In this document: positions 17,447-61,842 of the stretch, piece by piece
Layout of the letters: each line of letters begins with the position of its first letter
How positions within the stretch are numbered: the stretch's first letter is position 1
Assembly: GCA_965240325.2 (NCBI GenBank)
Contig: OZ251224.1
Span: 2,418,001-2,482,000, forward strand
Length of the DNA: 64,000 nucleotides
Direction: 5' to 3'
From: Rebecca billardiae RCC1528
Taxonomy: Eukaryota; Protista; Haptophyta
Notes under the pieces: generated by a model
The model's database searches: none
What the model was told of the DNA's origin: nothing
Seen by the model: the letters and a program-made list of their open reading frames with translations, nothing else
Position numbers and translations under genes: made by a program

Positions 17447-20068
17447 CGGGGAACTTACAGTCAGACGCTCTGAATCGGCCCCCTCGCTCAGAGCGCTCTG
17501 AGCGAGGGGCCGATTCAGAGGGTTTTCCGCCCGCCCCACTGGCGAGCGCGGTGCGGGACGTACATCGCACTGGGGCGGTGCTCAGCACTGCACTCACGGC
17601 TCGCCGCGATGTGTTCGGGCGGTGGACGGGGCTGAATCGGCCGAGAGTGACGGTGCGATGGGCCGTGGTGACTCTGCCATCACCCAGTGATCTCGTGCGG
17701 TGCCAGCTCGCCCTTCGCTTCGTCGCCACTCGCACTCGCACCAGTCGCGTGCGCCCATGGCTTGCCTTTCGCGCGCTGTGTTCCCGCGCAGTGTGTGCTT
17801 GGTAGCAGGGTGCTGGTGGCCGGTGGTTGCCGGCGCGGAGGAACGAAATGTTTGCAGCTACGCTACATCCCAGACGCCATGTGCCCGTCCTCGTCGAGCG
17901 ATGGACAGACACGCGTGTCGCGCATGCGCTCGCGGAAGCAGGCTGCACGGCGGCGCGCGGGCCTGGCTGCACGCGCAGGACAAGCTGCACCACACAGCTG
18001 CCCCCGCCATGAGCCCCAGCTGCGTACGCACACCGTTTCCGTGTTGTCTGATCCGCCAGGCCGACACGGTGCGGAGACTGCGTGCGTGAGACACCAACAG
18101 TCAGCGGCCACAGCGCACACGGTTGCGTGCGGCAGCAATCTGGCTTACAGCTTTCTCTCGGAAGCGATGGCCACGTCGACCGGCTGGCAACGTCGGTGCG
18201 CTAAGCGATGGCGCGACATCGCTGCTACCTGCCGTTGGGGACCCCTCGCGCAAGAAAGCCCTCGTTCCTCGTCGGAAGGGCGGGCGCGACCGCGCCACGC
18301 CTCCCTCGCGCTGCTCGCTCGCATTGCTCACGGCCACGCTTGCGCTCACGCTCGCGACATCGGCCGCGCCACCGCCCGTGGTAGTGAGCTCGGTCACCAC
18401 CGCCGTGGTGCTTTCGGGTGCTTTACGTTTGCCCTGGCCTACCGTGCGCCGGCAGCCGCCAGGCGAGTGCATTGGCCTCCGGCCGGCAGGGCGGCCGTTC
18501 TCACTCTGCGAGTGCGCGCGCTGGGGCGAACTGCTTCGGCATGCCCGGCATCCTGATTCAGACGGCAAGTGCATCTGCATCCGCCCGACACGCCGCCCAC
18601 TGAGCGCCAGGCGCCGGACCGATGGTGCTATTGCTGCAGCTGAGCGGACCTGGTGCCGAGCGTCTGACGCTGTGCATGTTGCGAAACCCACCGCTATTGC
18701 CGCACCCGTCCGCATGCGCATGGGTCAGCGCTGCTTGAGGTGCGGCCTCCACCATCGGCACCGCCGCCGAAGTGCCAGACGCGGAAGGGGCTGTCTCGCC
18801 CACGTACAGCGCTAAGCTGCGCGCCGGGCGGGACACGCCCACCACGCCCGGCGGGTACGAAGTCCTCCTAAGGCTCCGAGCGCCGACGCTGTACGCGGTG
18901 ACGAGTTGAGCCCTGCTGCACAGCTTCTGCAAACGCCAAGTCTCGGACTCTGCGCAAGCTGGATTTTTATTTTAATTAAAATCCCTGCAAGGCGGAATGT
19001 AAAAAGAGGCTGCATAAAATCCCAATCCACAAGTCATCTCCCCTCATAACGCTGGTACGGCTGCGTTGAAGCTGCCAACGCGAGCCACAACAGTTGCTGT
19101 CCCAGCCGCAGCATCTGCAGCAGCTGCTTGGAGCAGGACTCCCGCGACAGCGACCCCCCGAAGCACCTTCCCGCGCGGCTGCTCGGACGACGGTGTCCTC
19201 AGATTGCCGCCGCTCAGCCGATCGTCGAGCCACAGCTGCCGGAGGTGCAAGGGCTGCGAGTGCTGTTGGCGATATGTCAGCAAGTGCGGGTGTGCCAGCG
19301 GCAGCGATGGGGCGACTGCCACCGGCGCGGTTGCTGTTTCATCAATCGAAGCAACGGCTGCATCAGCTGCTGCGCGCCGCCGCATGTGCCAGTGACCTGT
19401 GTGCGCCGTGGCCGCTGACTGTCGGTGTCTCACGCAGTCTCCGCGCGGTGTCGGCCTGGCGGATCAGACAACACGGAAGAGGTGTGCGTACGCAGCTGGG
19501 GCTCATGGCGGGGGCAGCTGTGTGGTGCAGCTTGTCCTGCGCGTGCAGCCAGGCCCGCGCGCCGCTGTGCAGCCTGCTTCCGCGAGCGCATGCGCGACAC
19601 GCGTGTCTGTCCATCGCTCGACGAGGACGGGCACATGGCGTCTGGGATGTAGCGTAGCTGCAAACATTTCGTTCCTCCGCGCCGGCAACCACCGGCCACC
19701 AGCACCCTGCTACCAAGCACACACTGCGCGGGAACACAGCGCGCGAAAGGCAAGCCATGGGCGCACGCGACTGGTGCGAGTGCGAGTGGCGACGAAGCGA
19801 AGGGCGAGCTGGCACCGCACGAGATCACTGGGTGATGGCAGAGTCACCACGGCCCATCGCACCGTCACTCTCGGCCGATTCAGCCCCGTCCACCGCCCGA
19901 ACACATCGCGGCGCGCCGTGAGTGCAGTGCTGAGCACCGCCCCAGTGCGATGTGCGTCCCGCACCGCGCTCGCCAGTGGGGCGGGCGGAAAACCCTCTGA
20001 ATCGGCCCCTCGCTCAGAGCGCTCTGAGCGAGGGGGCCGATTCAGAGCGTCTGACTGTAAGTTCCCCG
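17447..20068. mobile_element. Element A: non-autonomous foldback element, ~675-bp TIRs, 9-bp TSD (Mutator-like signature)
   Basis: GTGCGTCGA at 17438-17446 and 20069-20077; ends CGGGGAACTTACAG...CTGTAAGTTCCCCG; near-identical arms about 17447-18122 and 19398-20068; no transposase ORF. Confidence 0.92.
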
Positions 20069-20949
20069 GTGCGTCGATTCATTCCTCGGCACGATGGAGG
20101 CCGAGCTGGTTGTCCCGACCGGTCCAGACCTCAGGATTATCCTAGATCTGCAGTAAGGTCTGGCGTTTGCCACTGGCGACTGCACACGGCAACAGGGGCG
20201 TTTGCGCCCTGTTGTCGTGTGCACACTGGGGCGCAAAAGGGGTCACCCTCAGGGGGTTTCGCACTGCTGTTGCCGTGTGCACCGGCCCGCTGTGGCCGTG
20301 CACACGGCAACAGGGCGCAAACGGCCCTGTTGCCGTGTGCAGGCGTGCATGGCTTGCGATGGCAGCCAGCCGTCAGCAGGGCGCCACGCCCACTGTTCGT
20401 TGGTAGGCTGGCCCGATGGCGTCGCGGAGCTCACGCGTACGGGGGAGGAGGGCATCGACGAGGAGACGACCAAGGGCGAGAAGCAGCAGGGGGCACGCAG
20501 CACGGGGCTCGGAGCATGCCGCGAGCACGCGTGCCTCCACACCGTCGCACATCAACCTTGCTCGTAGCTGTGCGCTGTGCTGCCACTCATCTCACCATCG
20601 CCCATGCTACGGGCGCGGCCGGGTGGTGGGCATCTACCTGTCGGCGCAGCACTGGCACCGGTGGTCGCCAGACACTCCTCGACTTGCTCTGCGCGTCACA
20701 GCAAGGAGACGGCAGCGGCACAGCTGTGTGAGCTCGCAGATGAAGTGCTCCTCTGCTTTGCGAGGCTGAGAGGCTGAGCACGCGTGGCGAGCGCTGGCAT
20801 TCCCCCGCATTCATGAGACCAACAGGTACATAGCCGTGCCCAGGAGCGCAGGACCAACCGCCGGGTGCTGCTTCAAACACCTGCGCCCCACTCTGCCGGC
20901 AGGCTGAGGGGCGCTCTACTCTATGCTGCACGCGGCAGCAGCAGCTGGG

Positions 20950-22100
20950 CCGTTGGGATGGTCCTGCACGGATGACGGCGGTCGCCGCGGCTGACAGCTT
21001 GGTGTCACTGGTTCGAAGGGCCTGGACGACGGACGCGCCGAGCGTGGTGACGCTGCTCGATGCGCCCACGGCACTGCCAAGCGCGCTGGAGCCGCTGCCT
21101 CGAGCACTACTGTGCCCGCGCCCAGCTTGGGCAGCAGCAGCTGCGCTCAACTCCGCGCCGCGTGCCGTGGCAGCAGCAGGGATGGTGCCACGGCGGCCGG
21201 CGGCGGTCGACGGAGCTGTCGGCTCGGCGGTGCACGCCCGAGGGGCCTGGGCGGTGGGCGCACCGAACGCGGTGCCGCTGCTCGCCTCGCCCATGGCGCT
21301 GGAGCCGCTGCCATCCGACGCTGCTGCGCCCGCGCCAAGCTTGGGCAGCAGCGGCTGCGCTCGACTCCGCGCCGCGTGGGGCGGCAGCACCAGGGATGGT
21401 GCTACGGCGGGCGACGACGGTCGCTAGAGCTGAAAGCTCGGCGGTGTGCGCCTGAGGGGCCTGGGCGGTGGGCGCACCGAACGCGGTGCCGCTGCTCGCC
21501 TCGCCCATGGCGCTGGAGCCGCTGCCATCCGACGCTGCTGCGCCCGCGCCAAGCTTGGGCAGCAGCGGCTGCGCTCGACTCCGCGCAGAGTGCGGCGGCA
21601 GCAGCAGGGATGGTGCCACGGCGGGCGGCGGCGGTCGACGGAGCTGTCGGCTCGGCGGTGCACGCCCGAGGGGCCTGGGCGCTGGACGCACCGAACGCGG
21701 TGCCGCTGCTCGCCTCGCCCATGGCGCTGGAGCCGCTGCCATCCGACGCTGCTGCACCCGCGCCAAGCTTGCGCAGCAGCGGCTGCGCTCGACTCCGCGC
21801 CGCGTGGGGCGGCAGCAGCAGGGATGGTGCTACGGTGGGCGACGACGCTAGAGCTGAAAGCTCGGCGGTGTGCGCCTGAGGGGCCTGGGCGGTGGGTGCA
21901 TTGAGCGCGCTGACGCCTCTCGCCTCGCCCGGCGCGCTCGAGCCGCTGCCATCCGATGCTGCCGCGCCCGCGCCCTGTCGCGCCGAGTGCGGCTGCAGCA
22001 TCAGGGATGGCGCCACGGCGGGCGGGCGGCGGTGCATGCAGCTAGCAGCTCGGTGCTGCACGCGCGAGGGGCCTGGGCGGCAGACGCGCGCAATGCAGTG
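20950..22100 (+). repeat. ~213-bp tandem repeat, about 5 copies
   Basis: CT(G/C)GAGCCGCTGCC anchor at 21086, 21299, 21513, 21727 and 21937. Confidence 0.92.
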
Positions 22101-22939
22101 ACGCTGATGCACGCGTCAGGCGCGCTGGCCAGCCCCCGGAGCTGTTGCTACGACACTTCTTCTGTCCTGCTGCGAGCCGAGCCGCCAGCAGGTTCCGGGG
22201 CGGGCAATGCCGGTCAGCTCATATTCATAAGGCCGGCGGCGCATACCAGTCGTAGCCCGGCAGGTAGGCGATGCAGAAGTTATCAGCAGCATCATGCATC
22301 GTCATCACTACATCAGCATCTGCCTAGACGAGTACGACGTAAGAACTCTTTAAATTATCCACGCGTACTACGGCACCGAGCATATATCTCGAATCATCGT
22401 CAATCTGCTCCGACTAGCCGTTCAGAGCGGTACTCCGACTACGACGATGCATCAGCCAGCTCCGGGGCGGCGGCTGTCCGACACTCTGCCGTCATGTGCG
22501 TATATATATATCTGAAGTGACTCTTACTCCACCTAGCGGTCTATCCGGATCGGTACCCTGGCGGCGGTGTTGTCGTCTGTCCGCCGTCACAGCCTGACTG
22601 CTCGCGTAGCTAGTCACTTATCAGTGATGTGATGGTCTCGTCGTCCGCGTCCGGCCGGACTGTCGCGACGACAAGTCGTGCTGGGCCTGGCGGCTCACAG
22701 TGTAAGTTAGTAGAAGCTAACTCATCAATGTACGAGCATCAGTAGTGAGCAGCAGCAGTAGCAGCTCGACTGCTGGCGTCATCACCGTGCTACACTCCGG
22801 CGCGACACGGTCACGGTCAGCTGGTCAGCAGTCTATACTTATACGCCGGGACCGTAGTACTGTAGTAGAGTACGTATGATACAGTAGTTTTAACGACGAC
22901 CGGTCGGCGCGCGTGCCAAGCAGCACTCAGCACCGCCCG

Positions 22940-24910
22940 ACCACCGCCGCCGGCTTGGCCGTGGCACCTCCCTGCTGCTACCACCGCATGCGGCGCGAAG
23001 CCTCCGGAGCGCAGCTGCTGCCAGGCCTGCCAGCTGCAGCCGTGCAGCGGCGCCGGGGCACGGGCGCAGCGGCATCGGATGGCAGAGGCTCGAGCGCGCT
23101 ACGGAACGAGGCGAGCGGCTACACCGCGCTCGGTGCGTCCAGCGCCCACGCCTCTCGGGTGGGCACTGCCAAGCTTTCAGCTGCTGCGGCCGCCCGCCGT
23201 GGCACCATCCCTGCTGCTGCTGCCGCACGCGGCGCGGAGTGGAGCGCTGCTGCTGCTGCCCTGGCCGGGCGCGGGCGCAGCAGCACTGGATGGCAGCGGC
23301 TCCAGCGCTATGGGCGAGGCGAGCAGCGGCACCGCGCTCGGTGCGTCCAGCGCCCAGGCCCCTCGGGCGTGCACCGCCGAGCTGCCGGCTGCAGCAACCA
23401 CCGCCGCCCGCCGTGCCACCATCCCTGCTGCTGCTGCCGCACGCGGTGCGGAGTCGAGCGCAGCCGCTGCTGCCCAAGCTGGGCGCGGGCGCAGCAGCGT
23501 CGGATGGCAGCGGCTCGAGCGCCATGGGCGAGGCGAGCAGCGGCACCGCGTTCGGTGCGCCCAGCGCCCAGGCCCCTCGGGCGTGCGCTGCCGAGCTTCC
23601 AGCTGCGTCGACCGCCGCCGCCCGCCGTGGCACCATCCCTGCTGCTGCCGCCGCACGCGGCGCGGAGTCAGGCGCGGCTGCTGCTGCCCAAGCTGGGCGC
23701 TGGTGCAGCAGCATCGGATGGCAGCGGCTCCAGCGCGCTGCGGGAGGCGAGCAGCGGCACCGCGTTCGGTGCGCCCACCGCCCAGGCCCCTCGGGCGTGC
23801 ACCGCCGAGCTTTCAGCTCCAGCGACCCACGCCGCCCGCCGTGGCACCATCCCTGCTGCTGCCGCCGCACTCGGCGCGGAGTCGAGCGCAGCCGCTGCTG
23901 CCCAAGCTTGGCGCGGGCGCAGCAGCGTCGGATGGCAGCGGCTCGAGCGCCATGGGCGAGGCGAGCAGCGGCACCGCGTTCGGTGCGCCCACCGCCCAGG
24001 CCCCTCGGGCGCACACAGCCGAGCTTTCAGCTCCAGCGACCGCCGCCGCCCACCGTGGCACCATCCCTGCTGCTGCTGCCGCACGCGGCGCGGAGTCGAG
24101 CGCAGCCGCTGCTGCCCAAGCTTGGCGCGTGCGCAGCAGCGTCGGATGGCAGCGGCTCGAGCGCCATGGGCGAGGCGAGCAGCGGCACCGCGCTCGGTGC
24201 GCCCACCGCCCAGGCCCCTCGGGCGCACACAGCCGAGTTTTCAGCTCCAGCAACCGCCGCCGCCCACCGTGGCACCATCCCTGCTGCTGCTGCCGCACGC
24301 GGCGCGGAGTCTAGCGCAGCCGCTGCTGCCCAAGCTGGGCGCGGGCGCAGCAGCGTCGGATGGCAGCGGCTCCAGCGCGCTGCGGGAGGCGAGCAGTGAC
24401 ACCGCGCTCGGTGCATCCAATGCCCGGGCCCCTCGGGCGCGCACCGCCGAGCTGACAGCTGCGCCGACCCACGCCGCCCGCCGTGGCACCATCCCTGCTG
24501 CTGCAGCCAATGCGGCGCGGAGTCAAGTGCAGCTGCAGCTGGGCCCCAGCTGGGCGCGGGCACAGCAGCACCAGATGGCAGCGGCTCCAGCGCGCTGGGC
24601 AGTGCCGTGGTCGTGTGGAGCAACGTCACGGCGCTCGGCGCGTCCATCGACGAGGCCCCTCGAGCGAGCGACACCGAGCTGTCATCTGCGGCGAAAGCCG
24701 TCATCCGCCGCGGGACCATTCCAGCAGCTGCTGCCGCATGCAGTGCAGACTCGAGCGTGGCTGCCGCTGGTGTTGGCGGCCCGGATGGGCGCGGGTGCAG
24801 CATCATCAGGTGCCAGCGACCCCATCGCGGCGGGCGCGATGGGCCAGGTCGCTGCGTTTGGCGCGCCATTGCCCAGGCCGTTCAAGCGAGCACCACCGAG
24901 CTGTTAGTTG
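22940..24910 (-). repeat. Same ~213-bp tandem repeat, inverted, about 9 copies
   Basis: GTGGCACCATCCCTGCTGCTG recurs about every 213-214 bp and is the reverse complement of the left array. Confidence 0.92.
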
Positions 24911-26471
24911 GAGCAACTGCTGCCGCCCGTCATTATACTGTACGTACTGCTGCTGCAGCATCAACAGCGCCGCTGTTACCAGCAGCGCTGCGCTCGTGTA
25001 TCCGAAGCAGCGCCGCATTGATGGTCCTGCGGTCTGAGTAGGGGAGTATGCCAGTAGCTCGCATGCACCTGGAGTGCAGTCCATGCCTGTACTGCCTCGC
25101 CGAGTACTACTAGAGTAGTAGGACCTCATGTGCTCACGCAGCTGTGCCGCTGCCGTCTCCTTGCTGTGACGCGCAGAGCAAGTCGAGGAGTGTCTGGCGA
25201 CCACCGGTGCCAGTGCTGCGCCGACAGGTAGATGCCCACCACCGGGCCGCGCCCGTAGCATGGACGATGGTGAGATGAGTGGCAGCACAGCGCACAGCTA
25301 CGAGCAAGGTTGATGTGCGACGGTATGGAGGCACGCGTGCTCGCTGCATGCTCCGAGCCCCGTGCTGCGTGCCCCCTGCTGCTTCTCGCCCTTGGTCGTC
25401 TCCTCGTCGATGCCCTCCTCCCCCGTACGCGTGAGCTCCGCGACGCCATCGGGCCAGCCTACCAACGAACAGTGGGCGTGGCGCCCTGCTGACGGCTGGC
25501 TGCCATCGCAAGCCATGCACGCCTGCACACGGCAACAGGGCCGTTTGCGCCCTGTTGCCGTGTGCACGGCCACAGCGGGCCGGTGCACACGGCAACAGCA
25601 GTGCGAAACCCCCTGAGGGTGACCCCTTTTGCGCCCCAGTGTGCACACGACAACAGGGCGCAAACGCCCCTGTTGCCGTGTGCAGTCGCCAGTGGCAAAC
25701 GCCAAACCTGGCTGAGATCTGCACGCCAGTGGGCGGCCCACTGGCGTGCAGATTTCGGGTTTCGTCAGGTTGGCGCGCGCTGGGGCGGACGCTCCCGCCG
25801 CCACCTCGCTCTCGCCTTCCGCCGCCAGGGCGAGGCCGCGCGAAGTCCAGTAGATCTTCCGATGGGACGCAGCGGGGCGGTAGCGAAGCGGTGAACTACT
25901 GTCGCTTGCGCGTGGCGCAGCGCTTCGCGCCCTCGCACCTCGACGGTCAGCTGCAGGCCCGCGAGAGCGCGAGCGTGCGCCGCCGCCACATTCAGCCAGA
26001 GCCATGCCGCGCCTTGCCTGCCGAGGCAGCGAAGAGGCACGCACGTGAAGCCGCTGGGCACCATGGCGCGCGCCCACGGCCGTACTGTCACATGGCTCAC
26101 GCCATCCTTGGATGCGCGCCTCGGGTTGCGCTCAGCGCGCGCATACTTTGCGGGGACGACAGCACGGCTGAAGCCGAGAGGCGGCGCACACGCCCGTGCG
26201 GGCTCAAGGCGCCGAGCAGATGGTCAGACGCGAGTTGCCCGGCGCAGGGCGGCGCAGAAAGGCCCTTTGCCTCTGCCCGACCGCGTGCGCCATCGCCGCG
26301 TGCACGTCTACGACCGCGGCGGCGCGGCAGCGGGCGGCGCCTCGCGGCGGATGGCTGTGGCGGGCGCACGCGGCGGGTTTTGAATTTCTCTCATTTTCCG
26401 AGTTTCCCAAATCCTGAGGTCTGGACCGGTTGGAAGATTCCGCCAATCCGTGCGCAGGTTGGGGGAGCGCG

Positions 26472-28426: not shown

Positions 28427-28501
28427 GCCCGTGTAGCTCAGTTAGGTCAGAGCGTTCGACCAATAATCGAAAGGTCACCAGTTCGAGCCTGGTCATGGGT
28501 A
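28427..28501 (+). tRNA. tRNA-Ile (anticodon AAT)
   Basis: Cloverleaf: GCCCGTG/CATGGGT acceptor stem, GCTC/GAGC D-stem, TTCGA-CCAATAA-TCGAA anticodon arm, ACCAG-TTCGAGC-CTGGT T-arm, followed by CCA and a TTTT Pol III terminator. Confidence 0.9.
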
Positions 28502-28792
28502 CCATTTTGTCCCCGTTCTTCACACCGGATGCGTCGCTTTTTGTCCTCTTGTTTTCGCGCTGGCGGTCTTGGCCTTGGCTTCAGTTGCTCGGGCACGTTG
28601 CATGCGCCAGCCCGCCAGGCGAGTGAGACGGCTACCGTGACCGTGCATCTGGCATCAGCGCGAACGGCGTCGTCTGCGATACGAAGTCACTGAGCGTCAT
28701 TCGGATCCGGGATCGGGCCCGCCGACACGGGTCCGGTCTGCGGCGACGACGGACGAGTGTCGAGTGTGGGCCCGTCCGGCGACGCGCGTCCG

Positions 28793-29691: not shown

Positions 29692-29812
29692 CTCGTCGGG
29701 CAAGTGCTCGCCAGCGGCGCCATAAAATGGGAAGACGATGCAGTAGTTGATTTGGCCGCGCCCTGACTGTAACGACCACGTAACGACCACTCGACCCCAG
29801 CAGCTCACCAAC

Positions 29813-30766
29813 ATGGCGGCGACGAGCACCATCACCCTCGGCGCCGTGCTCGTCGCCGCCGCCCTCCTCCTGCTCGGGTGCGCGGCGTGTCGGCCGCGCC
29901 GGCGCCCGCGCGGCGGGGCCGGCGTGGCTGCGCCGGACACCTTCGTCGGCTCGCTCGTGCACGCGCTCAACGCGCCCTCGACCACGCAGTGGCTCAACCT
30001 CGGGCTGTGGCCGCGCGGCGCTCGCGGCGGCGCGTCAGCGTACGCGGCCGCGGCCGAGGCGCTGGCCGCGCGCGTGGGCGAGGCCGCGAGCGTGCGTCGC
30101 GGGTGCGCGGTGCTCGACGTGGGCTGCGGCTTCGGCGAGAGCCTCGTGCTCTGGCTCTCGCCGCGCTTCCGCGCCGCGCGCGCCGTCGGCGTCAACGCGT
30201 CTGCCGCCGAGGTTGCGGGCGCGCGCGCGCGCGTGCGCGCGGCAGAGGCGTCCGACGGCGCCGTCGTGGTGTGCGCGGACGCGGCGGCGCTGCCCGAGGC
30301 GCTCTGCGCCGGCGACTTCCACGCCGTCGTCTCCGTCGACGCGGCGTACCACTTCCGCCCGCGCGACGCGTTCCTACGCGGCGCGTGGCGCGCGCTCGCG
30401 CCAGGCGGCTCGTTCGCCGCGGCCGACGTGGTCGGCGGCGGCGGCGGCGGCGCGCGCGCGCAGGCGTCGTGGCGGCGGCGTGCGTTCTGCGTGCTCGCGG
30501 GGATCCCGCTCGTCAACCTCGCGCCCGACGCCGCCGCGTACGAGGCGCGGCTGCGCGGCCTCGGCTTCGAGGCGGTCGCGGCCGAGGACGTGACCGAGGC
30601 CGTTCTCGGCGGCTTTGGCGCGTGGGCGGCCGCGCACGAGGCGTGGGCGGTGCGGCTCGCGGGGCGCTTCATCCGCGCGATGCGCGCCCACGCGGACGTG
30701 CGTTTCGTCGTCGTGCGCGGCACCAAGCCCAGGCCGTCGGGGCCGTCACTACCCGATGGCGATTGA
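29813..30766 (+). CDS. Class I SAM-dependent methyltransferase with N-terminal membrane anchor
   Basis: WLNLGLW, VLDVGCGFGES (motif I), FHAVVSVDAAYHF and LAPGG. Confidence 0.9.
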   Translation: MAATSTITLGAVLVAAALLLLGCAACRPRRRPRGGAGVAAPDTFVGSLVHALNAPSTTQWLNLGLWPRGARGGASAYAAAAEALAARVGEAASVRRGCAVLDVGCGFGESLVLWLSPRFRAARAVGVNASAAEVAGARARVRAAEASDGAVVVCADAAALPEALCAGDFHAVVSVDAAYHFRPRDAFLRGAWRALAPGGSFAAADVVGGGGGGARAQASWRRRAFCVLAGIPLVNLAPDAAAYEARLRGLGFEAVAAEDVTEAVLGGFGAWAAAHEAWAVRLAGRFIRAMRAHADVRFVVVRGTKPRPSGPSLPDGD

Positions 30767-32759: not shown

Positions 32760-33560
32760 CGGTTGGCGCACGGGGCGGCGCTCCCCGGATTAATAGTGCC
32801 GCCGCCGCCGCCGCCTCCCCCCGTCCGGTCGCTCGCGCCGACCGCCGCCTGGGCGAGGCCGCGCGATGTCCACTAGAGCTTCCGATGGGACGCAGCGGGG
32901 CGGTAGCGAGGCGGTGAACTACTGTACCTTGCGCGTGGCGCAGCGCTTTGCGCCCTCGCACCTCGATGGTCAGCTACAACCCCCCCGTGAGCCGCTACAT
33001 CGTTCCGAGCCAGAGACATGGGCGCCTTGCCTGCCGAGGCAGCGGAGAGGCACGCACGCGCGTGAAGCCGCTGGGCACCGTGGCGCGCGTCTACAACCGT
33101 ACTGTCACATGGCTCACGCCTTCCTGAGATGCGCGCCTCGGGTTGCGGCTCAGCGCACGCATACTTCATATCGGCACTCGTCAGCGACTGGGCACGGCTG
33201 ACGACTATAGTGACTGTTAAGACACGCACCCGTGGTCGACAGCGGACTGCTGAAGCGAGAGGCGGCGCTCACGTCCGTGCGGACTCAAGGCGCGGAGAAG
33301 AAAGTCAGACGCGAGTCGCACAGTGCAGGGCGGCGCAGAAAGGCTCTATGCCTCTGCCAGACCGCGTGCGCCGCATCGACGCCGCGTGCCTCGGTTGCGC
33401 GGGGCCTTGCGGCCACAGCCACGGTGCCAGGCGTATCCGCGTAATTCAGGCACTCGTCATAAGTGCCGTCAATCACTGACTATATATGCGACCGCGCGGC
33501 CGCGCGGCAGCGGGCGGCGCCTCGCGGCGGATCAGGCTGAGTGGCGGCGCACGCGGCGGC
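32760..33560 (+). repeat. Second, diverged copy of the element F body (dispersed repeat)
   Basis: Shares cttccgatgggacgcagcggggcggtagcga..gcggtgaactactgt and ccgtactgtcacatggctcacgcc with 25768-26380 but lacks the 21-bp TIR. Confidence 0.85.
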
Positions 33561-46980: not shown

Positions 46981-47887
46981 ATCCAGCGTTGGTTGTTTGC
47001 TTGCAGGCTTGCCGTGCCAAATTCGGTTGCAACAAGTAACATCACACATGTCCCAGCTATGATCAATTATTCATCATTATTCATACAGTGATACACACAT
47101 AATCATCGCGTAATATCAATTAAGCATGCCGCTGATAACTAGTGAGCCGCTGTTTTTTTTAGCGCATCATATATGCAGCACAATCATATGCAACGCCACT
47201 CAGGGCATATGGTCGCGTGGCGCCTGGCGACCGACAACGGACTCTGACTCAGTGACTCTGATGAGGGCCTCGGAGGCAGACTGCCAATAACTAGCAGCAC
47301 ATGCGCGCGGAGCCGTGCGCCGCAACACTACTCGTCTGCAGGGCTCCGGCGGACGGCAAGTTGGTTGGCCCGGCAAGCGCACTGCTGACTCGTCTCGGCC
47401 ACGCAGGAGCGCATGGCTGAAAGCCGTCCGCCTGAGTGAGAGAGTCTCGTGGATCCAGCGCCAATAACTGCCAAGCCGCTCAGACCGCGCCGAGCTGCCG
47501 CGCCGTCCACGCCCCCAAAAGGCCCACTCCCGCCGCCCGAGCATCCTGACTCGGACGACTTTCACTTTGCAGGCCGCAGCGGGCCTCAACTCTCAAGTAG
47601 CCGTAGGCCGCCGCGCCGCTGAAGGCGCAGCCGACGACCCCGGTGTGGAGTCACTAGCTAGTCAGCACGTGGCTGCACGTGCGACTCTGACAGAATGACT
47701 CTCGCCCTCTCGGATGGCGACGACATGGTCGACATGCGCCTCACCCCCGGCCCCACCGCGGCCGCGCTGCCAGTGCCCGCCCGTTCGGTCGGCGCATCAC
47801 GCGTGCAGCGCAGTGCCATATTACGCGGTACATGCGCGCTGCGCTTCCACTCGGGCCGAATATAGGGTGAGCAGAGTTGTAACTGAC

Positions 47888-49253
47888 TCAGTGTGAAGAC
47901 GATGATGCCGCCTCAGCGCTGCGCTTCCCCTCGGTGCAGTGCGGCTTGTGCACCACCACGCGCGCTGCAGGTGCTCGCGGCTGCAGAAGACCGCCACGTG
48001 GCAGCGCTCACACTTCCTCACGCCACGGCCCGACTGTGCGCACACCATGCAGCACGTGGAGGCCACCTCGCGATCTGCGGCGTAGCCGCTGAGCCAAAAC
48101 ATCGGATCCAGGGAGGCGCTGTCAAGCTCGTGCCCGCGGCGCAGCAGCCGCACGCCCTCGCCTACGTTGCGCTCCACGCCCGCGCCTGCCAGCACCAGCC
48201 GCGCCAATCCGACGTGTGCACGTGGGAGCCCGCCGTCGACTGCTAGCCTGAACAAGCGCGCCGCCTCAGCCCAGTCCTGCGGGACGCCCTCGCCCCTCTC
48301 GCACCACACGCCCAGGTTGAACTGCGCATCTGCGTTGCCCTGCTCGGCCGCCAGCCGATACCAGCGCGCCGCCTCGGCCATGTCCTGCGGCACGCCCCCG
48401 CCCTTCTCGCAGCACACGCCCAGGTTGAACTGCGCAACTGCGTTGCCCTGCTCGGCCGCCAGCCGATACCAGCGCACCGCCTCGGCCATGTCCTGCGGCA
48501 CGCCCTCGCCCTTGGCGCAGCACACGCCCAGGTTGCACTGCGCAAGTGCGTCGCACTGCTCGGCGGCCAGCCGGTACCAGCGCGCCCCCTCGGCCATATC
48601 TTGCGGCACGCCCTCGCCCTTCTCGCAGAACACACCCAGGTTGTACTGCGCCCGTGCGTTGCCCTGCTCGGCCGCCAGCCGGTACCAGCGCGCCGCCTCG
48701 GACGTATCTTGCGGCACGCCCTCGCCCGTCACGCAGCACTTGCCCAGGTTGCACTGCGCATTTACGTTGCCCTGCTCGGCCGCCAGCCGGTACCAGCGCG
48801 CCGCCTCGGCCCAATCCTGCGGCACACCCTCGCCCTTAAAGCAGCACACGCCCAGGTCGAACTGCGCATCTACGTTGCCCTGCTCGGCCGCCAGCCGGTA
48901 CCAGCGCGCCGCCTCGGTCATGTCCTGCGGCACGACTGTGCCCAAACTGAAGCACCTGCCCAGCGCGTACTGCGCTGGTGCAAACCCCTGCTCGGCCGCC
49001 AGCCGGTACCAGCGCACACCTTCTTCGAGATCCTGCTCGTGCCCGTGCCTTCCCTGGGCGTGGAGATTGCCCAGCCAATGCTGAGCGTCCGCGAGCCCAC
49101 GATCCGCGGCGATGCGGCAGAGGCGAGCCGCCTCGCGCACGTCGCGCGCGACGCCGTCGCCCACTTCGGTGCGCTTCGCCAGCATGAACGTCGCACGCGC
49201 GTCGCCCCGCCCCGACCGGCGTCGGAGCAGCCTCACCGCCGCGTCGCCCCCAT
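47888..49253 (-). pseudogene. Sel1-repeat (about 10)/zf-MYND paralogue with two frameshifts
   Basis: ATGGGGGCGAC versus ATGGAGGGC(G/A)AC in paralogues (-1, giving MGATRR*). TGGTGGTGCAC versus TGGCGGGTGCAC near 47955 (-1) removes the HKPHC ligands. An internal in-frame ATG at 49185 could give a truncated product. Confidence 0.8.
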
Positions 49254-49412
49254 CGCGTCGGACACCCCTCGAAAAGCCTCGGAGCAAGCTCGGAGGGTGA
49301 CGAGAGTCGGAGACCGTTGGTCGTTTGTGAAGCGGCAGCAGCAGCTCTTGATCGGTGGAGCTCGGCAGCTCGCGGGTGCGCAACGGTGAGTTGCGCGCGC
49401 TCGCGCACAGGT

Positions 49413-51907: not shown

Positions 51908-51953
<46 letters not shown>

Positions 51954-53435: not shown

Positions 53436-54848
53436 GGTAAGGGCCGTCTGTGATGAGGGCAGCTCGGCCGACGACCGACATCCACACTCGGCGCACGCCA
53501 GCCGCCGACGCGCCCGCGCCCGGCCGGCCGGCCGGGCCGGCGGCGGCGCGGCGCTGGGCGGCGCGCCGCTGGATGGAGTCTAGTTACGTACGGGACGACT
53601 GCGACGGAGGGTGCACCGCCACCGCGGGCCCCGAACTACGTTCGTTCTACGGAAAAGGACCGCGGAACGCGGTCATTATCGTTTTATTTTTTTGAAATCT
53701 GAATAGCTCGATCCGTGGCTGGCCCTCATCTGTCACAGTGCCTGCAGAGCTCTGACACTTGCCGTCGGAGCTTACCGTTTACTAATACTAGTAATACTAT
53801 AAGATTTAACGTGCACACTTGCCCTTGCCCGGGCCTTGGTTCAGGCGTGATTGACGCCATCCAACACTGCACAAAGACAGTAGACACCGCCGCACACGGC
53901 ACAAAAACAGTCACAGACCGGCGCAGCAGGTGAGTGGCGCGTTGCCGCACCTTGCATCGAGGCGGCGATTGCAGCAGCAAGAACGGCCGCCCCTCGCTCG
54001 GAGGCACCTGCCGTCGTCGTTGCCAGGGAAGTCGCGAGCTCCGCCGATGGAGAGCTGCAGAAGCTGCTTGAGAGCTGTGCACGAACTGCGACGCAGTGCA
54101 CACTCCTTCATGAGACCTTCACCGCCGCCAGCTTAGGCAGGCGAGATTGACGCCCGCCAACTGTACCGAGTCTGAGAAAAGTATGTAGTAGTAGTACACA
54201 GTGACAGAGCTTCCAGTCTTCTCCGCCTATTGTCGGTCTGTTTTGTGGCGGTGTCTTTGTGCAGTGTTGATATGGAGATAGTAACTGCTGTAACCGATGT
54301 TGAATGTCGCGGTCTACCCCCTCTGCCTCCATAGCTGCACGAGTGAAATACAGGCGCCTCGCTGCCAGGGCCAGTGGCCCAGACCCCTGCCCAGCTAGTA
54401 GCTACTGGGCTCGCTGACAGTCCCCTCCGTCCCCTTCCCCGCGCAGGGATCGGCTAGTGGCTGGCCCTCTGCCCACACTGGGGCACCCTAGGGGGTGCCC
54501 CTTCTGCCGACTCGGCTCAAACTCGATGATCTTGAATTGCAAGGCAGTGCACTGCTTGTACCTGGGACCACCCCACAGTGTTGGGCTTGTATGCTGTTGG
54601 AATGGCATACCCCCGCCCCCTCGTCTGGAGGCGGGCTGTCCACAGTGGAGTGGTGTCAAGGCACTAGGTGTCTCGGTCAGTGGTTTGAGGTTGGGTGAGG
54701 GTGGTGGTTGGTTGGGGGCTGGCCAGGGTACTGTTTTTTCCGGCGGCGCTACCATCGGCGACGGCTTCATGGGCGGTGACAGTTGGCGGGCGTCGATCTC
54801 GCCTGCCTGAGCTGTGTGCGTCTCTTATTCTTAGTAAACTGTAGGGCT

Positions 54849-54916
54849 GGAGGCTTCGGCCGCCAGCCTGATCACCCGGAGCCCGTTATAAAGGGAATTT
54901 TTTTTTTAAAAAAAAA
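54849..54916 (+). repeat. ~60-bp A-tailed repeat, copy 2
   Basis: ggaggcttcggccgccagcctgatcacccggagcccgttataaagggaa followed by a T run and an A run, 35 bp upstream of the Sel1 ATG. Confidence 0.7.
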
Positions 54917-54951
54917 GGTCTCTGCGGACGGGTGTCTGGCAAGTTGCCGCG

Positions 54952-56637
54952 ATGGAGGGCGACGCGGCGGTGAGGCTGCTCCGACGCCGGTCGGGGCGGG
55001 GCGACGCGCGTGCGACGTTCATGCTGGCGAAGCGCACCGAAGAGGGCGACGGCGTCGCGCGCGATCTGCGCGAGGCGGCTCGCCTCTGCCGCATCGCCGC
55101 GGATCGTGGGCTTGCGGACGCTCAGCATTGGCTGGGCGATCTCCACGCCCAGGGAAGGCACGGGCACGAGCAGGATCTCGAAGAAGGTGTGCGCTGGTAC
55201 CGGCTGGCGGCCGAGCAGGGGTTTGCACCAGCGCAGTTCAAGCTGGGCGTGTGCTGCCGTGATGGCGCGGGCATGCCGCAGGATATGGCCGAGGCGGTAC
55301 GCTGGTACCAGCTGGCGGCCGAGCAGGGCCTTGCAGCCGCGCAGTTCAACCTGGGCTGGTGCTGCGAGAAGGGCGATGGCGTGCCCCAGGATATGGCAGA
55401 GGCGGTGCGCTGGTACCGGCTGGCGGCCGAGCAGGGCCTTGCAGCCGCGCAGTTCAACCTGGGCTGGTGCTGCGAGAAGGGCGATGGCGTGCCCCAGGAT
55501 ATGGCAGAGGCGGTGCGCTGGTACCGGCCGGCTGCCGAGCAGGGGCACGCAGTTGCGCAGTGCAACCTGGGCTGGTGCTGCGAGAATGGCGAGGGCGTGC
55601 CGCAGGATATGGCCGAGGCGGCGCGCTGGTACCGGCTGGCGGCCGAGCAGGGCCTTGCAGCCGCGCAGTGCAACCTGGGCTGGTGCTGCGAGAAGGGCGA
55701 GGGCGTGGCGCAGGACATGGCCGAGGCGGTGCGCTGGTACCGGCTGGCGGCCGAGCAGGGGCACGCAGTTGCGCAGTGCAACCTGGGCACGTGCTGCGCG
55801 GAGGGCAAGGGCGTGCCGCAGGATATGGCCGAGGCGGCGCGCTGGTACCGGCTGGCGGCCGAGCAGGGCTATGCACGGGCGCAGTACAACCTGGGCTGGT
55901 GCTGCTCGATGGGCGAGGGTGTGCCGCAGGATGTGGCCGAGGCGGCGCGCTGGTACCGGCTGGCGGCCGAGCAGGGCTACGCACGGGCGCAGTGCAACCT
56001 GGGCACGTGCTGCGCGAAGGGCGAGGGCGTGCCGCAGGACATGGCCGAGGCGGCGCGCTGGTGCCAGCTGGCGGCCGAGCAGGGCTACGCAGCCGCGCAG
56101 TACAGCCTGGGCTGGTGCTGCGAGAAGGGCGAGGGCGTGGCGCAGGACATGGCCGAGGCGGTGCGCTGGTACCGGCTGGCGGCCGAGCAGGGCCACGTAC
56201 TAGCGCAGCTCAGCATGGGCTCTTGCTGCCATAACGGCGATGGCGTGCCGCAGGATATGGCTGAGGCTGCGCGCTGGTACCGACTGGCAGTCGATGGCGG
56301 GCTCCCAAAGGCACACTTGGCGTTGGCGTATCTGCTGCTGCCGGGAGAGGGTGTGGAGCGCAACGTGGGCGAGGGCGTGCGGCTGCTGCGCCGCGGGTAC
56401 GAGCTTGACAGCGCCTCGGTGGATCCGAGCGAGGCGCTCAGCGACTTTGCAGGAGATCGCGAGGTGGCCTCCACTTGCTGCATGGTGTGCGCACAGTCGG
56501 GCCGTGGCGTGAGGAAGTGCGAGCGGTGCCACGTGGCGGTTTTCTGCTGTCGAGAGCACCTGCAGCGCGCGTGGCGGGTGCACAAGCCGCACTGCACCGA
56601 GTGGAAGCGCAATGCTGCAGAGTCGTCGTCACATTGA
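54952..56637 (+). CDS. Sel1-like repeat protein (about 12-13 repeats) with C-terminal zf-MYND, 561 aa
   Basis: Same architecture and near-identical termini as 43154-45598; intronless. Confidence 0.95.
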   Translation: MEGDAAVRLLRRRSGRGDARATFMLAKRTEEGDGVARDLREAARLCRIAADRGLADAQHWLGDLHAQGRHGHEQDLEEGVRWYRLAAEQGFAPAQFKLGVCCRDGAGMPQDMAEAVRWYQLAAEQGLAAAQFNLGWCCEKGDGVPQDMAEAVRWYRLAAEQGLAAAQFNLGWCCEKGDGVPQDMAEAVRWYRPAAEQGHAVAQCNLGWCCENGEGVPQDMAEAARWYRLAAEQGLAAAQCNLGWCCEKGEGVAQDMAEAVRWYRLAAEQGHAVAQCNLGTCCAEGKGVPQDMAEAARWYRLAAEQGYARAQYNLGWCCSMGEGVPQDVAEAARWYRLAAEQGYARAQCNLGTCCAKGEGVPQDMAEAARWCQLAAEQGYAAAQYSLGWCCEKGEGVAQDMAEAVRWYRLAAEQGHVLAQLSMGSCCHNGDGVPQDMAEAARWYRLAVDGGLPKAHLALAYLLLPGEGVERNVGEGVRLLRRGYELDSASVDPSEALSDFAGDREVASTCCMVCAQSGRGVRKCERCHVAVFCCREHLQRAWRVHKPHCTEWKRNAAESSSH

Positions 56638-57007
56638 TGAGTCATCCGCAACTGATTTACTGCGTCATTTGCTCCGGGCCAGAGCTTCTGCAGTGACAGT
56701 GTGCTGCTGTGTGACTGGTCCCATCGTCATGATCGTGCTCTCAGTCATGATGACAGCTAGCTAGCTCAGCGGAGCCGCTCGGAGCTGCGCAGCTGACTCT
56801 GCTGAGGCCAGGACCGCCGCCCAGTGGCAGTGGCCAGTGGCGGCCCACCAATCGCCCGGATGGTGCTGCTTATACTTATAGTGCAGCAGCAGTTCGATCT
56901 TGAGTGAGCCAGCGCTGCTCATACAAGTCGTAGTTGCTCTGCTGCTACGACTCTACAGTATGGACGGCTGTCAACAAGTATACGCCTGTGAATACTGATG
57001 ATGTACA

Positions 57008-59191
57008 TCACTTGGCCAGCTCACAGTAGCGCTCACCACGGCGGACGGCGGCGGCGGCTTGCCTCGACGAGGCCGCGGCCACACGCGCGCGCCCGGCGCT
57101 GCCGCGCAAGCCGCCCGCACTTTCGACATCGTCTCCGTGCTCAGAGTCGTCGTCGTCCGCGTCCGCATCGTGGCCGTCGTCGCCATCGCCGTTGACGTGA
57201 GCGCCGTTCCCGGCGTCGTCGGCGGCGGCGCTCGGTCGAGCTCGCCTGTGGCTGCTGCCTTCCGCGCTGCCCGCGCCCGCACCGTCACCGCCCGCCTCGT
57301 CCGCCGCGCCGCCGCCGCGATGCCGTGGGACCAGCAGCGGCTTGGAGGCAGCCTGCTCGAGATCCTGCTCATCGACCTCGCTCGAGAGCTGGCTGGTCGA
57401 CGGCTGCACGACCGCGTCAAACGAGCCGTCGTCCTCCGCCCCGTGCTCGGCATGCGCAAGCTCGCGCGGCGTGCCTCTCCTGCCCCGGCGCAGGGCTTTG
57501 TTCGCTGCACCCGCAGCGCCCTCGCCCTCGCCGTTCGCGTCGCCGGCAGCGGCGTACCGCGCGGGCACGTCGCTCAGCTCGATCTCCCCGCCCGGCGTGA
57601 GCCGCGCGTCCTCGCCCTCGTCCGCGGGCCTCATCGGCTCCTCACGGCTCAGCCGCGCCGCCTTGAACCGAAACGGAGTCGCCCCTGGCTCGGCCACCGC
57701 CTCGAGCTGCGCCTCCTCCACGCCCTCGTCGAGGAGCTCGATCTCCGGCCCGTCCCGCCAGCAGCACACGTGCGCGCAGTTGGCGCGCGCGCCCGCGTCG
57801 AACGGGTTCCCGTCGTAGTACAGGTCCTTCACCTGCGCGCCGGGGCGGTGGGCGCGCACGAGCGCACACGCGCGCCTGAGCGGGTGGCGTGGCGCGTCGA
57901 GTGCCAAGGCTGACCCGGCGGCGGCCCCCCGTCCGCGCACAATGGGCCCCGAGCGCGCACGCCCGTGCCCGCACACGCCAGCGCGCGTGACGACGCGCCT
58001 CCCGCAGCCCAACTCTCCGCGCGCGCGTGTGTGTGTGTGCGTGTGCGTGTGCGTGTGCGTGAGAGAGGGGGCGCGGGGAGAGGCGCGCACGTTCTCATTG
58101 GTCGTCTCATTCACACAGATCAGGTAGCAGTGGTAGGTGCACAGCATGCAGAGCAGGACGCCGACGATGATGGTGTACAGCGCCAGCACGAACGCCGCCG
58201 GCGACTCGCCCACCGCCACGCCGAACGCCGAGAGCGAGTCCCCCTCGGCCGAGCTGCGCAGCGCCGCCCGCTCGGCGGTCCGGTCGGGCGCGGCACCGCC
58301 CCCGTCACCGGCGGCGTGCGGGCGAGCCCTGGGTGCGTGCGCGGAGGCGAGCACGTCCTGCGTGCGCAGCACGAGCTCGCAGATGCTGAAGCCGCTCACG
58401 TACGCGCAAAACGCGATGGTCACCACGAGAAAGCCGAAGAAGCAGCGGTAGTTGCCGCGTCCGACGCAGTTCCCGACCCACGGGCCTGCGCACGCGCACG
58501 CGCGGCGCGGCCGGCAGCGCGCGCGAGCCGGCCGGCGCGCGCGGGTGAGGCCGGTGTGCTCGGGCGCGTGGGCGCGCGGGCGCGTCGCGGGCGCTCGGCC
58601 GGGCCACCCATCGCGCGTGCTGCGCGCGCGCACGGCGCGCGGCGCGCACAGTGGTGGTCCCATTTCTCCACGCAGCGGTTGCACTCGCGGCAATGCGACG
58701 AGCGCGGTGGCCGGTAGATGCTGCAGGTGACGCACGGCTTGAGCACGAAGGTGCGGTTGCCCACGACGGCCTCGCGCCTGGCGTATTGCCCCCCTGCGCG
58801 AGGCGCGCGCGCCTCGTGCCCGCTCAGCCCGCGAGCAATCCGCTGCGCGCACCGCGCGCGTGCGCGCATGGCGCGCACTCATGGACTTGGGCAGCGGCGA
58901 CTCGCCCGACGGGATGGTGCCGGGGTCGAGGAAGGCGGTGAGCAGCAGTAAAGTGGACGAGCACGCGTATATCGCGATGCCCCCAACCATCACCGCCGGC
59001 GACAGCCGCACGGCGAGCTCTGAGCAGACCGTGAGGAAGAACACGATCGCAGGCGCGCTCAGCATCAGCACAAACGTGCGCAGCGCCGAGAGCTCCGGCC
59101 AGTTCCAGCGCCTGCTCTCCGGGCAGCATGGCGGGGGTCGGCCAGGCGTGAACGCGGTGCACACGGAGAGGCAGACTGCCGCGTCCGGCAT
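57008..59191 (-). CDS. DHHC palmitoyltransferase (ERF2/ZDHHC9-14-18-like); introns 58794-58878, 58486-58649, 57833-58090
   Basis: [34 protein letters not shown]|[22 protein letters not shown]|VK..NPFD; four TM segments; GT-AG introns restore the frame. Confidence 0.93.
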
Positions 59192-59344
59192 CGTGGCCCG
59201 CTCCGTGCGCACGCTCCGGCGAGAGGCCTACTGCCTACTTGCGTCCGCCGAGCAGCGCCACCATCAGTGGCAGTGGATGCACCGATGCAGGCGCCTGCGA
59301 CTTTCGCGAGTACCACTGAGCACAGTGGTGCTAATCTGCCCTGA

Positions 59345-61842
59345 GGGCACCGTGCCCTCTGGAGGGCACCGTGCCCTCGTGGGGCTCTGAGGGCACGGTG
59401 CCCTCGCGGGACGCAGCCTCGCACTGCGCGGCGCGCCGCGATGAGTTCGAGTGGTGGACGGGGGTGCATCGGATGCTAGTGACGGTGCGATGGGCCGCGA
59501 TGAGCCCGCCATCACCCAGTGATCTCGTGCGGTGCCAGCTCGCCCTCCTCCTCGTCGTCACTCGCACTGGCACCACGTTGCGCGCGCGCGCGCATGGCTT
59601 GCCTTGCGCGCGCTGTGTTCACGCGCAGTCTGCTTGGCAGCAGGGCGACCGTGGCTGGTGGTTGCGGTCGCGGATGATTGGAGTGTGTGCAGCTGCGCTA
59701 CATCCGCACGCGACCCGCCCGTCCTCGTCGAGCGCTGGAGAGACACGCGTGTCGCGCATGCACTCGAGTGGAAGCAGGAGAGCGGCACGCGAGCTTGGCT
59801 GCGCGCGCACGACAAGGTGCGCCAACACACAGCTCCTCCCGCCATGAGCACCAGCTACGCACGCACCCCTGCCGCGCTGCCTGACCTGCGAGGCCGCCGC
59901 GGTGCGGACACTGCGTGAGACACCCACGGTCAGCGGCCACGGCTGACACTGGTCAACAGCTCATGCAGCCGTTGCTGCAGCTTCGATTGCAACAGCAGCA
60001 GCGCTGGTGGCAGTCAACCCCATCACTGTCGCTGGCGTAACTACCCTCGGCGCCATAGCACCCACGGCACCAGCAGCCCTTGCACGTCCAGCAGCTGCGG
60101 CACGTCGCTCGGCTGAGCGGCGGCAACACGGACTGAGGCTGTCGTCTGAGCAGCCGCGCGGGCAGCTCCATGACCTTGGGGCGCACTGTCGCTGCATGCT
60201 GCTCCAAGCGGCTGCTGTAGCTGCTGCGGCTGAGACAGCAACTGCTATTGCTCGCGATGGCAGCTTCACCGCAGCTGTACCATCAGCATCATCAGTTAGA
60301 ACGCGATGTGGCAATAAATGGGATTTCCGCCGTTTTTTTCGCTCGATGGATTTCGAATTATAAATGAAAATCCCGCTGACAGAGACTTCAGAGACTTGGT
60401 GTGTGCACACACTTAACGTGGCGGCTGTGCTGCAGGGCTCACACGGTACGTGAAGCGTCGGCGCATGGAGCCTGGGGAGCTCTTATCCGCAGGGGTGTGG
60501 TAGGCGTGCCCCACCCCGCACGCAGCGCAGCGCTGTAGCAGCCGCTTCCGCGTACTCGCACTTTGGCGGTGGTGCCAAGGCCGCGCGCCGCTCGCCTGAC
60601 GGCATCGCCGCAGCAGCGCGGTCCCACGCGCATGCGGACGGGCGCGGCAATGGCGGTGGGGTTCGCAACGTGCAAGGCGTCAGCGGCTCGGCACCGGGTC
60701 CACCCGGCTGCAGCAGTAGCGCTGTCGGTGCTCGCGGCGCATGCGGCGTCAGGCGCTCACCAAGCGGCGTGTCGGGCGGGTGCGGATGCAGCTGCCGGAA
60801 CCAGGGCGCCGGGTATGCACGCGGCTGCAGCTCGCCCCAGCGCGCACTCGCAGGCAGTGAAGTCGGCCGCCCTGCCGGCCGGATTCGTAGGCGCTCGCTT
60901 GGCGGCTGCCGGCGCGCGACAAGCCAGAGCACGAGTAAAGCATCCGCGCCGCCACGGCGGTGGTGACAGAGAGCACGACCACGGGCGGTGGTGCCGCCGA
61001 TGCAGCGAGCGCGAGCTCGAGCGCGGCAGTGAACGTTGCAAGCAGCGTCAGCGGTGCGCGGAGCGATCAAGCCCGCCGTTCCAAGAGGAACAAGGGCGGC
61101 ATTGCGGGAGGGTAGGGGCACCGGCAGACAGCAGCGATGTCGCGCCATCGCTGATCGGACTGACGTGGCTAGCCGGTCGATGTGGCCATTGCTCGCGAGA
61201 GTATGCTATGAGCCAGATTGCTGTGCAGCACGCGACCGTGTCAGCCGTGGCCGCTGACCGTGGGTGTCTCACGCAGTGTCCGCACCGCGGCGGCCTCGCA
61301 GGTCAGGCAGCGCGGCAGGGGTGCGTGCGTAGCTGGTGCTCATGGCGGGAGGAGCTGTGTGTTGGCGCACCTTGTCGTGCGCGCGCAGCCAAGCTCGCGT
61401 GCCGCTCTCCTGCTTCCACTCGAGTGCATGCGCGACACGCGTGTCTCTCCAGCGCTCGACGAGGACGGGCGGGTCGCGTGCGGATGTAGCGTAGCTGCAC
61501 ACACTCCAATCATCCGCGACCGCAACCACCAGCCACGGTCGCCCTGCTGCCAAGCAGACTGCGCGTGAACACAGCGCGCGCAAGGCAAGCCATGCGCGCG
61601 CGCGCGCGACGTGGTGCCAGTGCGAGTGACGACGAGGAGGAGGGCGAGCTGGCACCGCACGAGATCACTGGGTGATGGTGGGCTCGTCGCGGCCCATCGT
61701 ACCGTCACTAGCACCCGATGCACCCCCGTCCACCACTCGAACTCATCGCGGCGCGCCGCGCAGTGCGAGGCTGCGTCCCGCGAGGGCACCGTGCCCTCAG
61801 AGCCCCACGAGGGCACGGTGCCCTCCAGAGGGCACGGTGCCC
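59345..61842. mobile_element. Element B: non-autonomous foldback element, ~605-bp TIRs, 3-bp TGA TSD, GGGC termini (PIF/Harbinger-like signature)
   Basis: TGA|GGGCACCGTGCCCTCTGG ... CCAGAGGGCACGGTGCCC|TGA; near-identical arms about 59345-59949 and 61238-61842. Confidence 0.9.

Follow-up and report, generated by a model that had tools for sequence, protein, structure and literature searches.

A stretch of 64,000 nucleotides from the haptophyte Rebecca billardiae RCC1528 (assembly GCA_965240325.2, contig OZ251224.1, positions 2,418,001 to 2,482,000 of the forward strand) was analysed as one window, and all positions given here are counted from its first letter. The window carries two long-inverted-repeat elements, A (17447-20068) and B (59345-61842), which share one non-coding body and end in two dissimilar terminal cassettes, as had been proposed in a first-pass annotation made from the letters alone. 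We consider it moderately probable that A and B are diverged subfamilies (approximately 77% identity) of a foldback-type, non-autonomous transposon whose terminal cassettes can be replaced. The term foldback-type denotes a structural class here, not a clade.

The arms of A (17447-18123 and 20068-19395) are 97.9% complementary over 678 nt, and those of B (59345-59954 and 61842-61234) are 98.9% complementary over 610 nt. These terminal inverted repeats (TIRs) account for 52% of element A and 49% of element B. On alignment of the two elements, A 17583-19932 matched B 61773-59414 with 76.7% identity over 2444 columns. The arms were about 81% identical and the 1.3-kb cores 75.6% identical, and a 38-nt block in the left inner arm of A was found to be identical across all four arms. 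When a small indel is allowed, the homology extends further outward, to approximately 17553-17574 in A and to 59405 in B, and conservation along the arm alignment is lowest around this junction. The homologous inner arms and core described in the first-pass annotation are thus confirmed. The opposite orientation of the two cores, which had also been pointed out, is present as well, but is uninformative beyond the orientation of insertion because the ends of each element are symmetric. With 76.7% identity, A and B fall short of the 80-80-80 rule for members of one family (identity of 80% or more across 80% or more of the length) and, judged by sequence comparison, they are related subfamilies or sister families.

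The body of A and B is non-coding. Mismatches between the two elements displayed no codon periodicity in any ungapped block, and 34 of the 38 indels were not multiples of three. The GC contents at the first, second and third codon positions were flat in every open reading frame (ORF) of A and B, unlike those of the adjacent real genes (the third-position GC of real genes in the window is 0.85-0.97), and no match to Pfam was obtained with the ORFs of either element. A coding body or a captured gene was ruled out on these grounds. An RNA gene was also considered and rejected, as the Rfam matches were chance hairpins far below the gathering scores, and a globally palindromic core was tried with the same outcome.

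Outside the shared body the two elements have different tips. In A, CGGGGAACTTACAG is found at both termini and is otherwise absent from the window. Both ends of A likewise have a perfect 53-nt hairpin (17468-17520, with its mirror copy at 19995-20047), of which there is none elsewhere in the window, and they hold about 30 more bases past these two features. The terminal 136 nt, hairpin included (17447-17582), were predicted to fold with -48.4 kcal/mol (z = -7.4). The ends of B each harbour three GGGCACSGTGCCC palindromes, six in total, with zero elsewhere in the window (0.4 expected). Local alignment of the outer cassettes of A and B gave a score of 15 against 9.3 ± 1.6 for shuffled sequences, a borderline value that was reached by 3 of 500 shuffles. 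The outer 61-127 nt of A and B therefore show no convincing similarity, in agreement with the unrelated ends noted at first pass.

A comparison of all four arms suggested how the two ends of one element stay alike. Among the 541 homologous arm columns of A and B, 423 were identical in all four arms. Differences between A and B that were mirrored in both arms of each element occupied 101 of the 541 columns, whereas 11 columns differed between the two A arms and 6 between the two B arms. In the outer cassettes, there was 1 arm-to-arm difference in A and none in B. Divergence within and between elements is about tenfold apart, whereas independent mutation since the split of A and B predicts similar values. 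As the mirrored differences far exceed those within an element, the arms appear to have been kept alike, and we infer from this pattern, which shows it clearly, that within each element both arms undergo concerted evolution. With homogenised arms, a cassette replaced at a single end would be carried over to the opposite end, and the symmetric swap at both ends that had been assumed at first pass is therefore not needed. Arm-to-arm gene conversion is established for large genomic palindromes such as those of the primate Y chromosome. The likeness to these palindromes is that their arms are near-identical while the whole structure diverges between lineages. They differ from A and B in that they are not mobile and are far larger, and in that for A and B the mechanism is deduced from the pattern of differences.

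The flanks of A are clear. An exact 9-bp target-site duplication (TSD), GTGCGTCGA, directly abuts both of its ends, as had been reported at first pass, and this 9-mer would be expected at any one given position with a probability of about 1e-5. A is a bona fide insertion, its TSD being 9 bp long. Mutator-like elements (MULEs), the Foldback clade included, have TSDs of 9 bp (8-11 bp) and long TIRs of one hundred to several hundred bp, and both are found in A, with a TIR of 678 nt at 97.9%. Mutator-like elements also typically insert promoter-proximally, and A lies upstream of a strongly coding minus-strand ORF, at a distance of 72 nt from its ATG (17375). The exact 9-bp TSD, the TIR of approximately 675 nt and the site near a gene start fit a Mutator/Foldback-type insertion, and support the Mutator-type assignment that A had been given.

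The flanks of B are ambiguous. The trinucleotide TGA is present on both sides (59342-59344 and 61843-61845), but the direct repeat reaches 8 bp, TGCCCTGA, at 59337-59344 and 61838-61845, and the final 5 nt of the terminal palindrome of B are part of the right copy. Two readings fit equally well. The ends may be symmetric with a 3-bp TSD, the TGCCC in the left flank being there by chance, or the TSD may be 8 bp long with a right end that is 5 nt shorter and is completed by the target. The same 5-nt coincidence is needed in both cases, and the same empty site is predicted (...ctaatctgccctgaagagtcac...). Between 3 and 8 bp, one copy cannot decide, and a 3-bp match, which arises 1 in 64 times by chance, carries little information. 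Of what was claimed for the ends of B at first pass, the three palindromes per end and the TGA on both sides are there, whereas the 3-bp TSD is matched equally by the 8-bp repeat. Because the TSD may be either 3 or 8 bp, the superfamily of B cannot be named. B lies 154 nt upstream of the ATG (59191) of a gene encoding a DHHC palmitoyltransferase, and A and B are thus both situated 72-154 nt upstream of the start codons of minus-strand genes.

Our explanation divides the TIR into two parts. The inner arm of approximately 550 nt would be inherited and shared. The outer cassette is short, consists of one 53-nt hairpin in A and of three palindromes of 13-17 nt in B, and presumably bears the recognition sites of the transposase. 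The outer cassette may have been replaced once, at one end, in one lineage, either by recombination with another hairpin-ended element or by expansion and turnover of short palindromic repeats. The new cassette would then have been copied to the other end via arm-to-arm gene conversion or re-synthesis of one arm. A, like the neighbouring element C described below, would have been moved by a Mutator/Foldback-like transposase making 9-bp duplications, and B may be moved, now or formerly, by an enzyme of different specificity. As the outermost bases of A and B differ completely, different enzymes, each with its own specificity, plausibly recognise the two cassettes.

The window also holds a second lineage, which was compared with A and B. 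Element C (20153-25714) is a 5.6-kb foldback with TIRs of approximately 590 nt at 98.5% identity. The outer 223 nt at its tips contain two hairpins of about 45 nt each, and in its interior 214-bp tandem repeats form inverted arrays (21083-21974 and 23056-24600). The outermost 5-7 nt of C are imperfect, and precede the shared GGTYTGGCG. The direct repeat AGATCTGCA that flanks C is probably a 9-bp duplication. A partial element, C2, runs off the end of the window. Positions 63355-64000 of C2 are 68% identical to the inner arm of C (20376-21025), and outside this homology, where C has its hairpins, C2 has a 1.4-kb array of repeats of about 202 bp. This array holds about 20 copies of CCGCTGGCG, the core of the near-palindrome CTCCGCTGGCGGAG. 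C and C2 hence appear to repeat the pattern of A and B, with a conserved inner arm and a different hairpin-rich outer part, and this recurrence points to a general turnover of terminal cassettes, not to a special cross-superfamily event. The terminal regions of A, B, C and C2 are all hairpin-rich (z from -3.7 to -7.5), and palindromes are concentrated there. In A and B the TIRs take up a large share of the element, are modular and carry repeats or palindromes toward the tips, as in foldback-type elements, and the same can be said of C with its inverted 214-bp arrays. Variability and exchange of TIRs among relatives, another trait of this class, is seen in A versus B and in C versus C2, two pairs only.

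Homology between A/B and C/C2 was examined and rejected, and they represent two unrelated foldback lineages. A segmental duplication of a unit comprising A and C was also rejected, as flanks and spacers are unrelated. The A/B-type elements each adjoin the left end of a C-type element; A and C are separated by 84 nt (20069-20152), and the distance from B to the first C2 motif is about 20 nt (61843-61862). The gap between the right TSD copy of A and the left TSD copy of C is 66 bases. By rough reasoning, the adjacency of A to C and of B to C2 seems closer than expected by chance or from promoter preference alone. The core motif CCRCTGGCG is also found in the outer TIRs of both A and C, and a palindrome just past the right end of C (25724-25746) contains it too. 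The features of the four elements are listed in Table 1.

Table 1. Positions of the parts of elements A and B, and of elements C and C2, in the 64-kb window
Feature	Position	Strand	Remarks
A left TSD copy	17438..17446		GTGCGTCGA, 9 bp
A left outer terminal cassette	17447..17552	+	CGGGGAACTTACAG; hairpin 17468-17520; CCACTGGCG motif at 17536; without counterpart in B
A left inner arm	17553..18123	+	about 81% identity to B arms; palindrome GACACGCGTGTC
A unique non-coding core	18124..19394		AT-rich patch near 18960-19030; 75.6% identity to B core
A right inner arm	19395..19962	-	
A right outer terminal cassette	19963..20068	-	hairpin 19995-20047
A right TSD copy	20069..20077		GTGCGTCGA, 9 bp
C with flanking 9-bp direct repeat	20144..25723		AGATCTGCA
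B left flank	59337..59344		3-bp reading TGA (59342-59344); 8-bp reading TGCCCTGA
B left outer terminal cassette	59345..59405	+	three palindromes (G)GGCACSGTGCCC(TC); imperfect 27-nt tandem arrangement
B left inner arm	59406..59953	+	14-nt palindrome CGCGGCGCGCCGCG at 59427-59440
B unique non-coding core	59954..61233		reversed relative to A
B right inner arm	61234..61781	-	
B right outer terminal cassette	61782..61842	-	three palindromes
B right flank	61838..61845		3-bp reading TGA (61843-61845); 8-bp reading TGCCCTGA (61838-61845)
C2, partial, off window end	61846..64000	+	

Other explanations for the structures of A and B were weighed. The first-pass annotation had proposed that one body took up the recognition modules of two superfamilies, with a Mutator-like transposase mobilising A (9-bp TSD) and one of the PIF/Harbinger type mobilising B (3-bp TSD). 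This agrees with outer cassettes that have no convincing homology, with the 9-bp TSD of A, and with the symmetric ends of B, which start with GGGC and have TGA on both sides; the near-identical arms and intact flanking repeats are compatible with recent movement of each element. B also resembles Tourist-like MITEs (miniature transposable elements with inverted repeats) of the PIF/Harbinger group in being non-autonomous, in lying near a gene and, in one reading, in its 3-bp flanking repeat. The TIRs of Tourist/PIF elements are, however, typically short (tens of bp, a usual and not a strictly defining trait), whereas those of B extend over 606-610 nt in a 2.5-kb element, and a 606-nt TIR is atypical of PIF/Harbinger. 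Moreover, Tourist/PIF elements target TWA (TTA or TAA) (PMC12595863), whereas the flanks of B are TGA. Taking into account in addition that the 3-bp match is a 1 in 64 event, that the repeat at B reaches 8 bp so that the flanks are equally well accounted for by a right end shorter by 5 nt, that a PIF or MULE transposase is absent from the window, and that each type is represented by a single copy, we regard the two-superfamily proposal as very unlikely, and the PIF/Harbinger label for B was not upheld.

A nested insertion would give a similar picture if the shared body were itself a transposon that had on two occasions inserted into the middle of short palindromic hairpin elements. Each composite would then look like one long-TIR element, and A would also move as one. 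The ends of the body would lie near 17553-17583 and 19932-19962 in A, and at 59406 and 61781 in B. Nesting of transposons is common, the outer cassettes are perfect inverted copies of hairpin or palindrome DNA and so a possible target, and A and B do lie beside hairpin-rich termini, C being 84 nt away from A and the first C2 motif about 20 nt away from B. This model is nevertheless disfavoured and, in our estimate, quite unlikely, because two independent strikes exactly at a centre of symmetry would be needed, because no target duplication was seen by eye at the junctions, which were placed to about 20 nt and not scanned formally, and because conservation of the arms is lowest at the junction, whereas it should be highest at functional termini. 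Nor was a free-standing cassette pair found in the window. We give still less credence to the view that B is not a discrete mobile unit at all, its palindromes being a local tandem expansion or a degenerate terminus, its TGA a coincidence, and only the A type functional. The B cassette is indeed a short imperfect tandem array with a 27-nt period, and its TSD evidence is weak, ambiguous and from one copy. On the other hand, the 98.9% identity of the B arms holds up to the last base, and on either side the arms stop exactly at the flanking repeat; the flanks are unrelated unique DNA (the 5' region of a gene and the C2 array), as for an insertion.

Several points also weigh against replaceable cassettes in diverged subfamilies, the explanation that we favour. 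Each type is present in one copy, and neither cassette was seen working in more than one insertion. An autonomous partner with matching ends, whether encoding a MURA/Phantom-type DDE transposase or a PIF-type DDE transposase plus a Myb-like ORF, was not found in the window. The outermost nucleotides are normally the most conserved part of a TIR and here they differ, which ordinary subfamily drift does not give. The concerted evolution of the arms is read from a pattern, and any mechanism for it is putative. The other end of C2 lies outside the window, and the array is only a putative part of the C2 TIR. Finally, the nearest precedent, Galileo, has alternative TIRs that are related (77% identity) and not unrelated.

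Galileo is a foldback-like transposon of the P superfamily. In Drosophila mojavensis, the same central region has been found with the TIRs of three subfamilies, and sequence exchange among copies was proposed as a source of new subfamilies (PMC3573991). A and B resemble Galileo in their long, internally structured TIRs and in the exchange of sequence among copies that we propose. In Galileo, however, the alternative TIRs are related (approximately 77%), one transposase family is involved, and the TSD is 7 bp, whereas the outermost 61-127 nt of A and B are without convincing similarity and their flanking duplications may differ in length. The difference from Galileo is one of degree, the exchanged tips being unrelated instead of 77% alike. 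A further comparison can be made with Drosophila FB and with Tm1 of root-knot nematodes, a Mutator/Foldback family with composite TIRs and 9-bp TSDs in which asymmetric outermost motifs are tolerated (PMC3169594). FB and Tm1 are mostly non-coding and have composite TIRs of variable length made of short repeats together with 9-bp TSDs, and A and C match this description. They differ from our elements in that the cassette of A is a single long hairpin and not a repeat array, in that the TSD of B is not clearly 9 bp, and in that no Phantom/MURA-type transposase is linked to A or B (none found in the window).

A broader formulation would be that, in this genome, the conserved non-coding body of foldback elements carries interchangeable hairpin end cassettes that are made symmetric, that the body switches between transposases and possibly between superfamilies, and that these elements home near other foldback termini, A beside C and B beside C2 being the examples. 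In this full form we think it unlikely. Non-autonomous transposons persist only while some transposase recognises their ends. If true, the exchange of whole cassettes would be a route by which such parasites escape the loss of a transposase, with arm homogenisation providing symmetry free of charge. It could also spawn families unrelated by their termini, and thereby confound classification based on TIRs and TSDs. With one pair and a weaker second pair in one 64-kb window, the present case is a lead and not a demonstrated mechanism.

Further copies and partners of A and B were searched for, the genome of the window being represented in the searched collections by short Logan contigs only. Exact scans for a 24-mer common to all four arms and for a two-block gapped pattern gave 0 matches, whether in metagenome, in genome or in viral collections. 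At the protein level, a 289-aa ORF of A had no match in a search, and A and B together contain 30 ORFs that start with ATG and have 60 or more aa, none of which was present in the collection used for exact look-up. No transposase domain was found in any of the ORFs of the window. Candidates for extra A/B fragments or solo ends within the window proved to be compositional matches of approximately 60% identity and were rejected. Replitrons were also dismissed as relatives, as they have short direct terminal repeats and not TIRs (bioRxiv 10.1101/2022.12.15.520654).

The window is eukaryotic DNA with a GC content of 59-83% in 2-kb bins, and encodes DHHC palmitoyltransferase, Kelch, ShK and poly(A)-polymerase-like domains along with several Sel1-repeat/zf-MYND proteins. 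The DHHC gene next to B appears to be interrupted by an intron, as a relative reads across residues that are encoded about 250 nt apart here. A word-indexed search with the DHHC region gave no match, one with the Sel1-MYND ORF was overwhelmed by repeat proteins, and three genes flanking the elements or close by were not found by exact look-up. In an exhaustive search, an ORF of the window (P0121) matched two Logan contigs only, of about 1.5 kb (L001 and L002; approximately 56576-58052; ERR14847148 and ERR14847151), and both contigs break at a (CA)n-like tract within the putative DHHC intron.

Concerning the region to the right of C, two direct repeats of approximately 500 bp (25806-26291 and 32829-33372) with about 85% identity were found 7 kb apart, bracketing ORFs that include a class I methyltransferase (29747-30763). 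Neither a reverse transcriptase nor an integrase was found in the ORFs scanned between them, and the pair is probably a segmental repeat rather than long terminal repeats. ARAGORN called two tRNAs, Ile-AAT at 28427-28504 (78 nt) and Ala-GGC at 36284-36379 (96 nt). Rfam at the gathering threshold gave no tRNA at either position, and both calls are probably false positives in GC-rich DNA.

To the left of A, a single open frame of at least 3433 codons occupies the minus strand at 5-10303 and runs off the window start (third-position GC 0.91). Pfam gave weak Ig-like (TMEM132) and cohesin-like matches only, and the frame is probably the gene of a giant low-complexity surface or extracellular protein. 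Between this frame and A lies an inverted-repeat element of approximately 780 bp (10741-11519), a possible Tc1/mariner-like MITE. Its TIRs are about 190 nt long (84%), TA dinucleotides border its ends (GTACCC...GGGTAC), and a long (TG)n/(ATGT)n microsatellite (11533-11671) adjoins it. The Sel1-repeat proteins form a cluster of paralogues (12377-12988, 43154-45598, 47821-49383 and 54952-56637) with 108-bp (36-aa) Sel1 repeats and a terminal zf-MYND. The copies are 80-88% identical at the DNA level, and at least two are full length.

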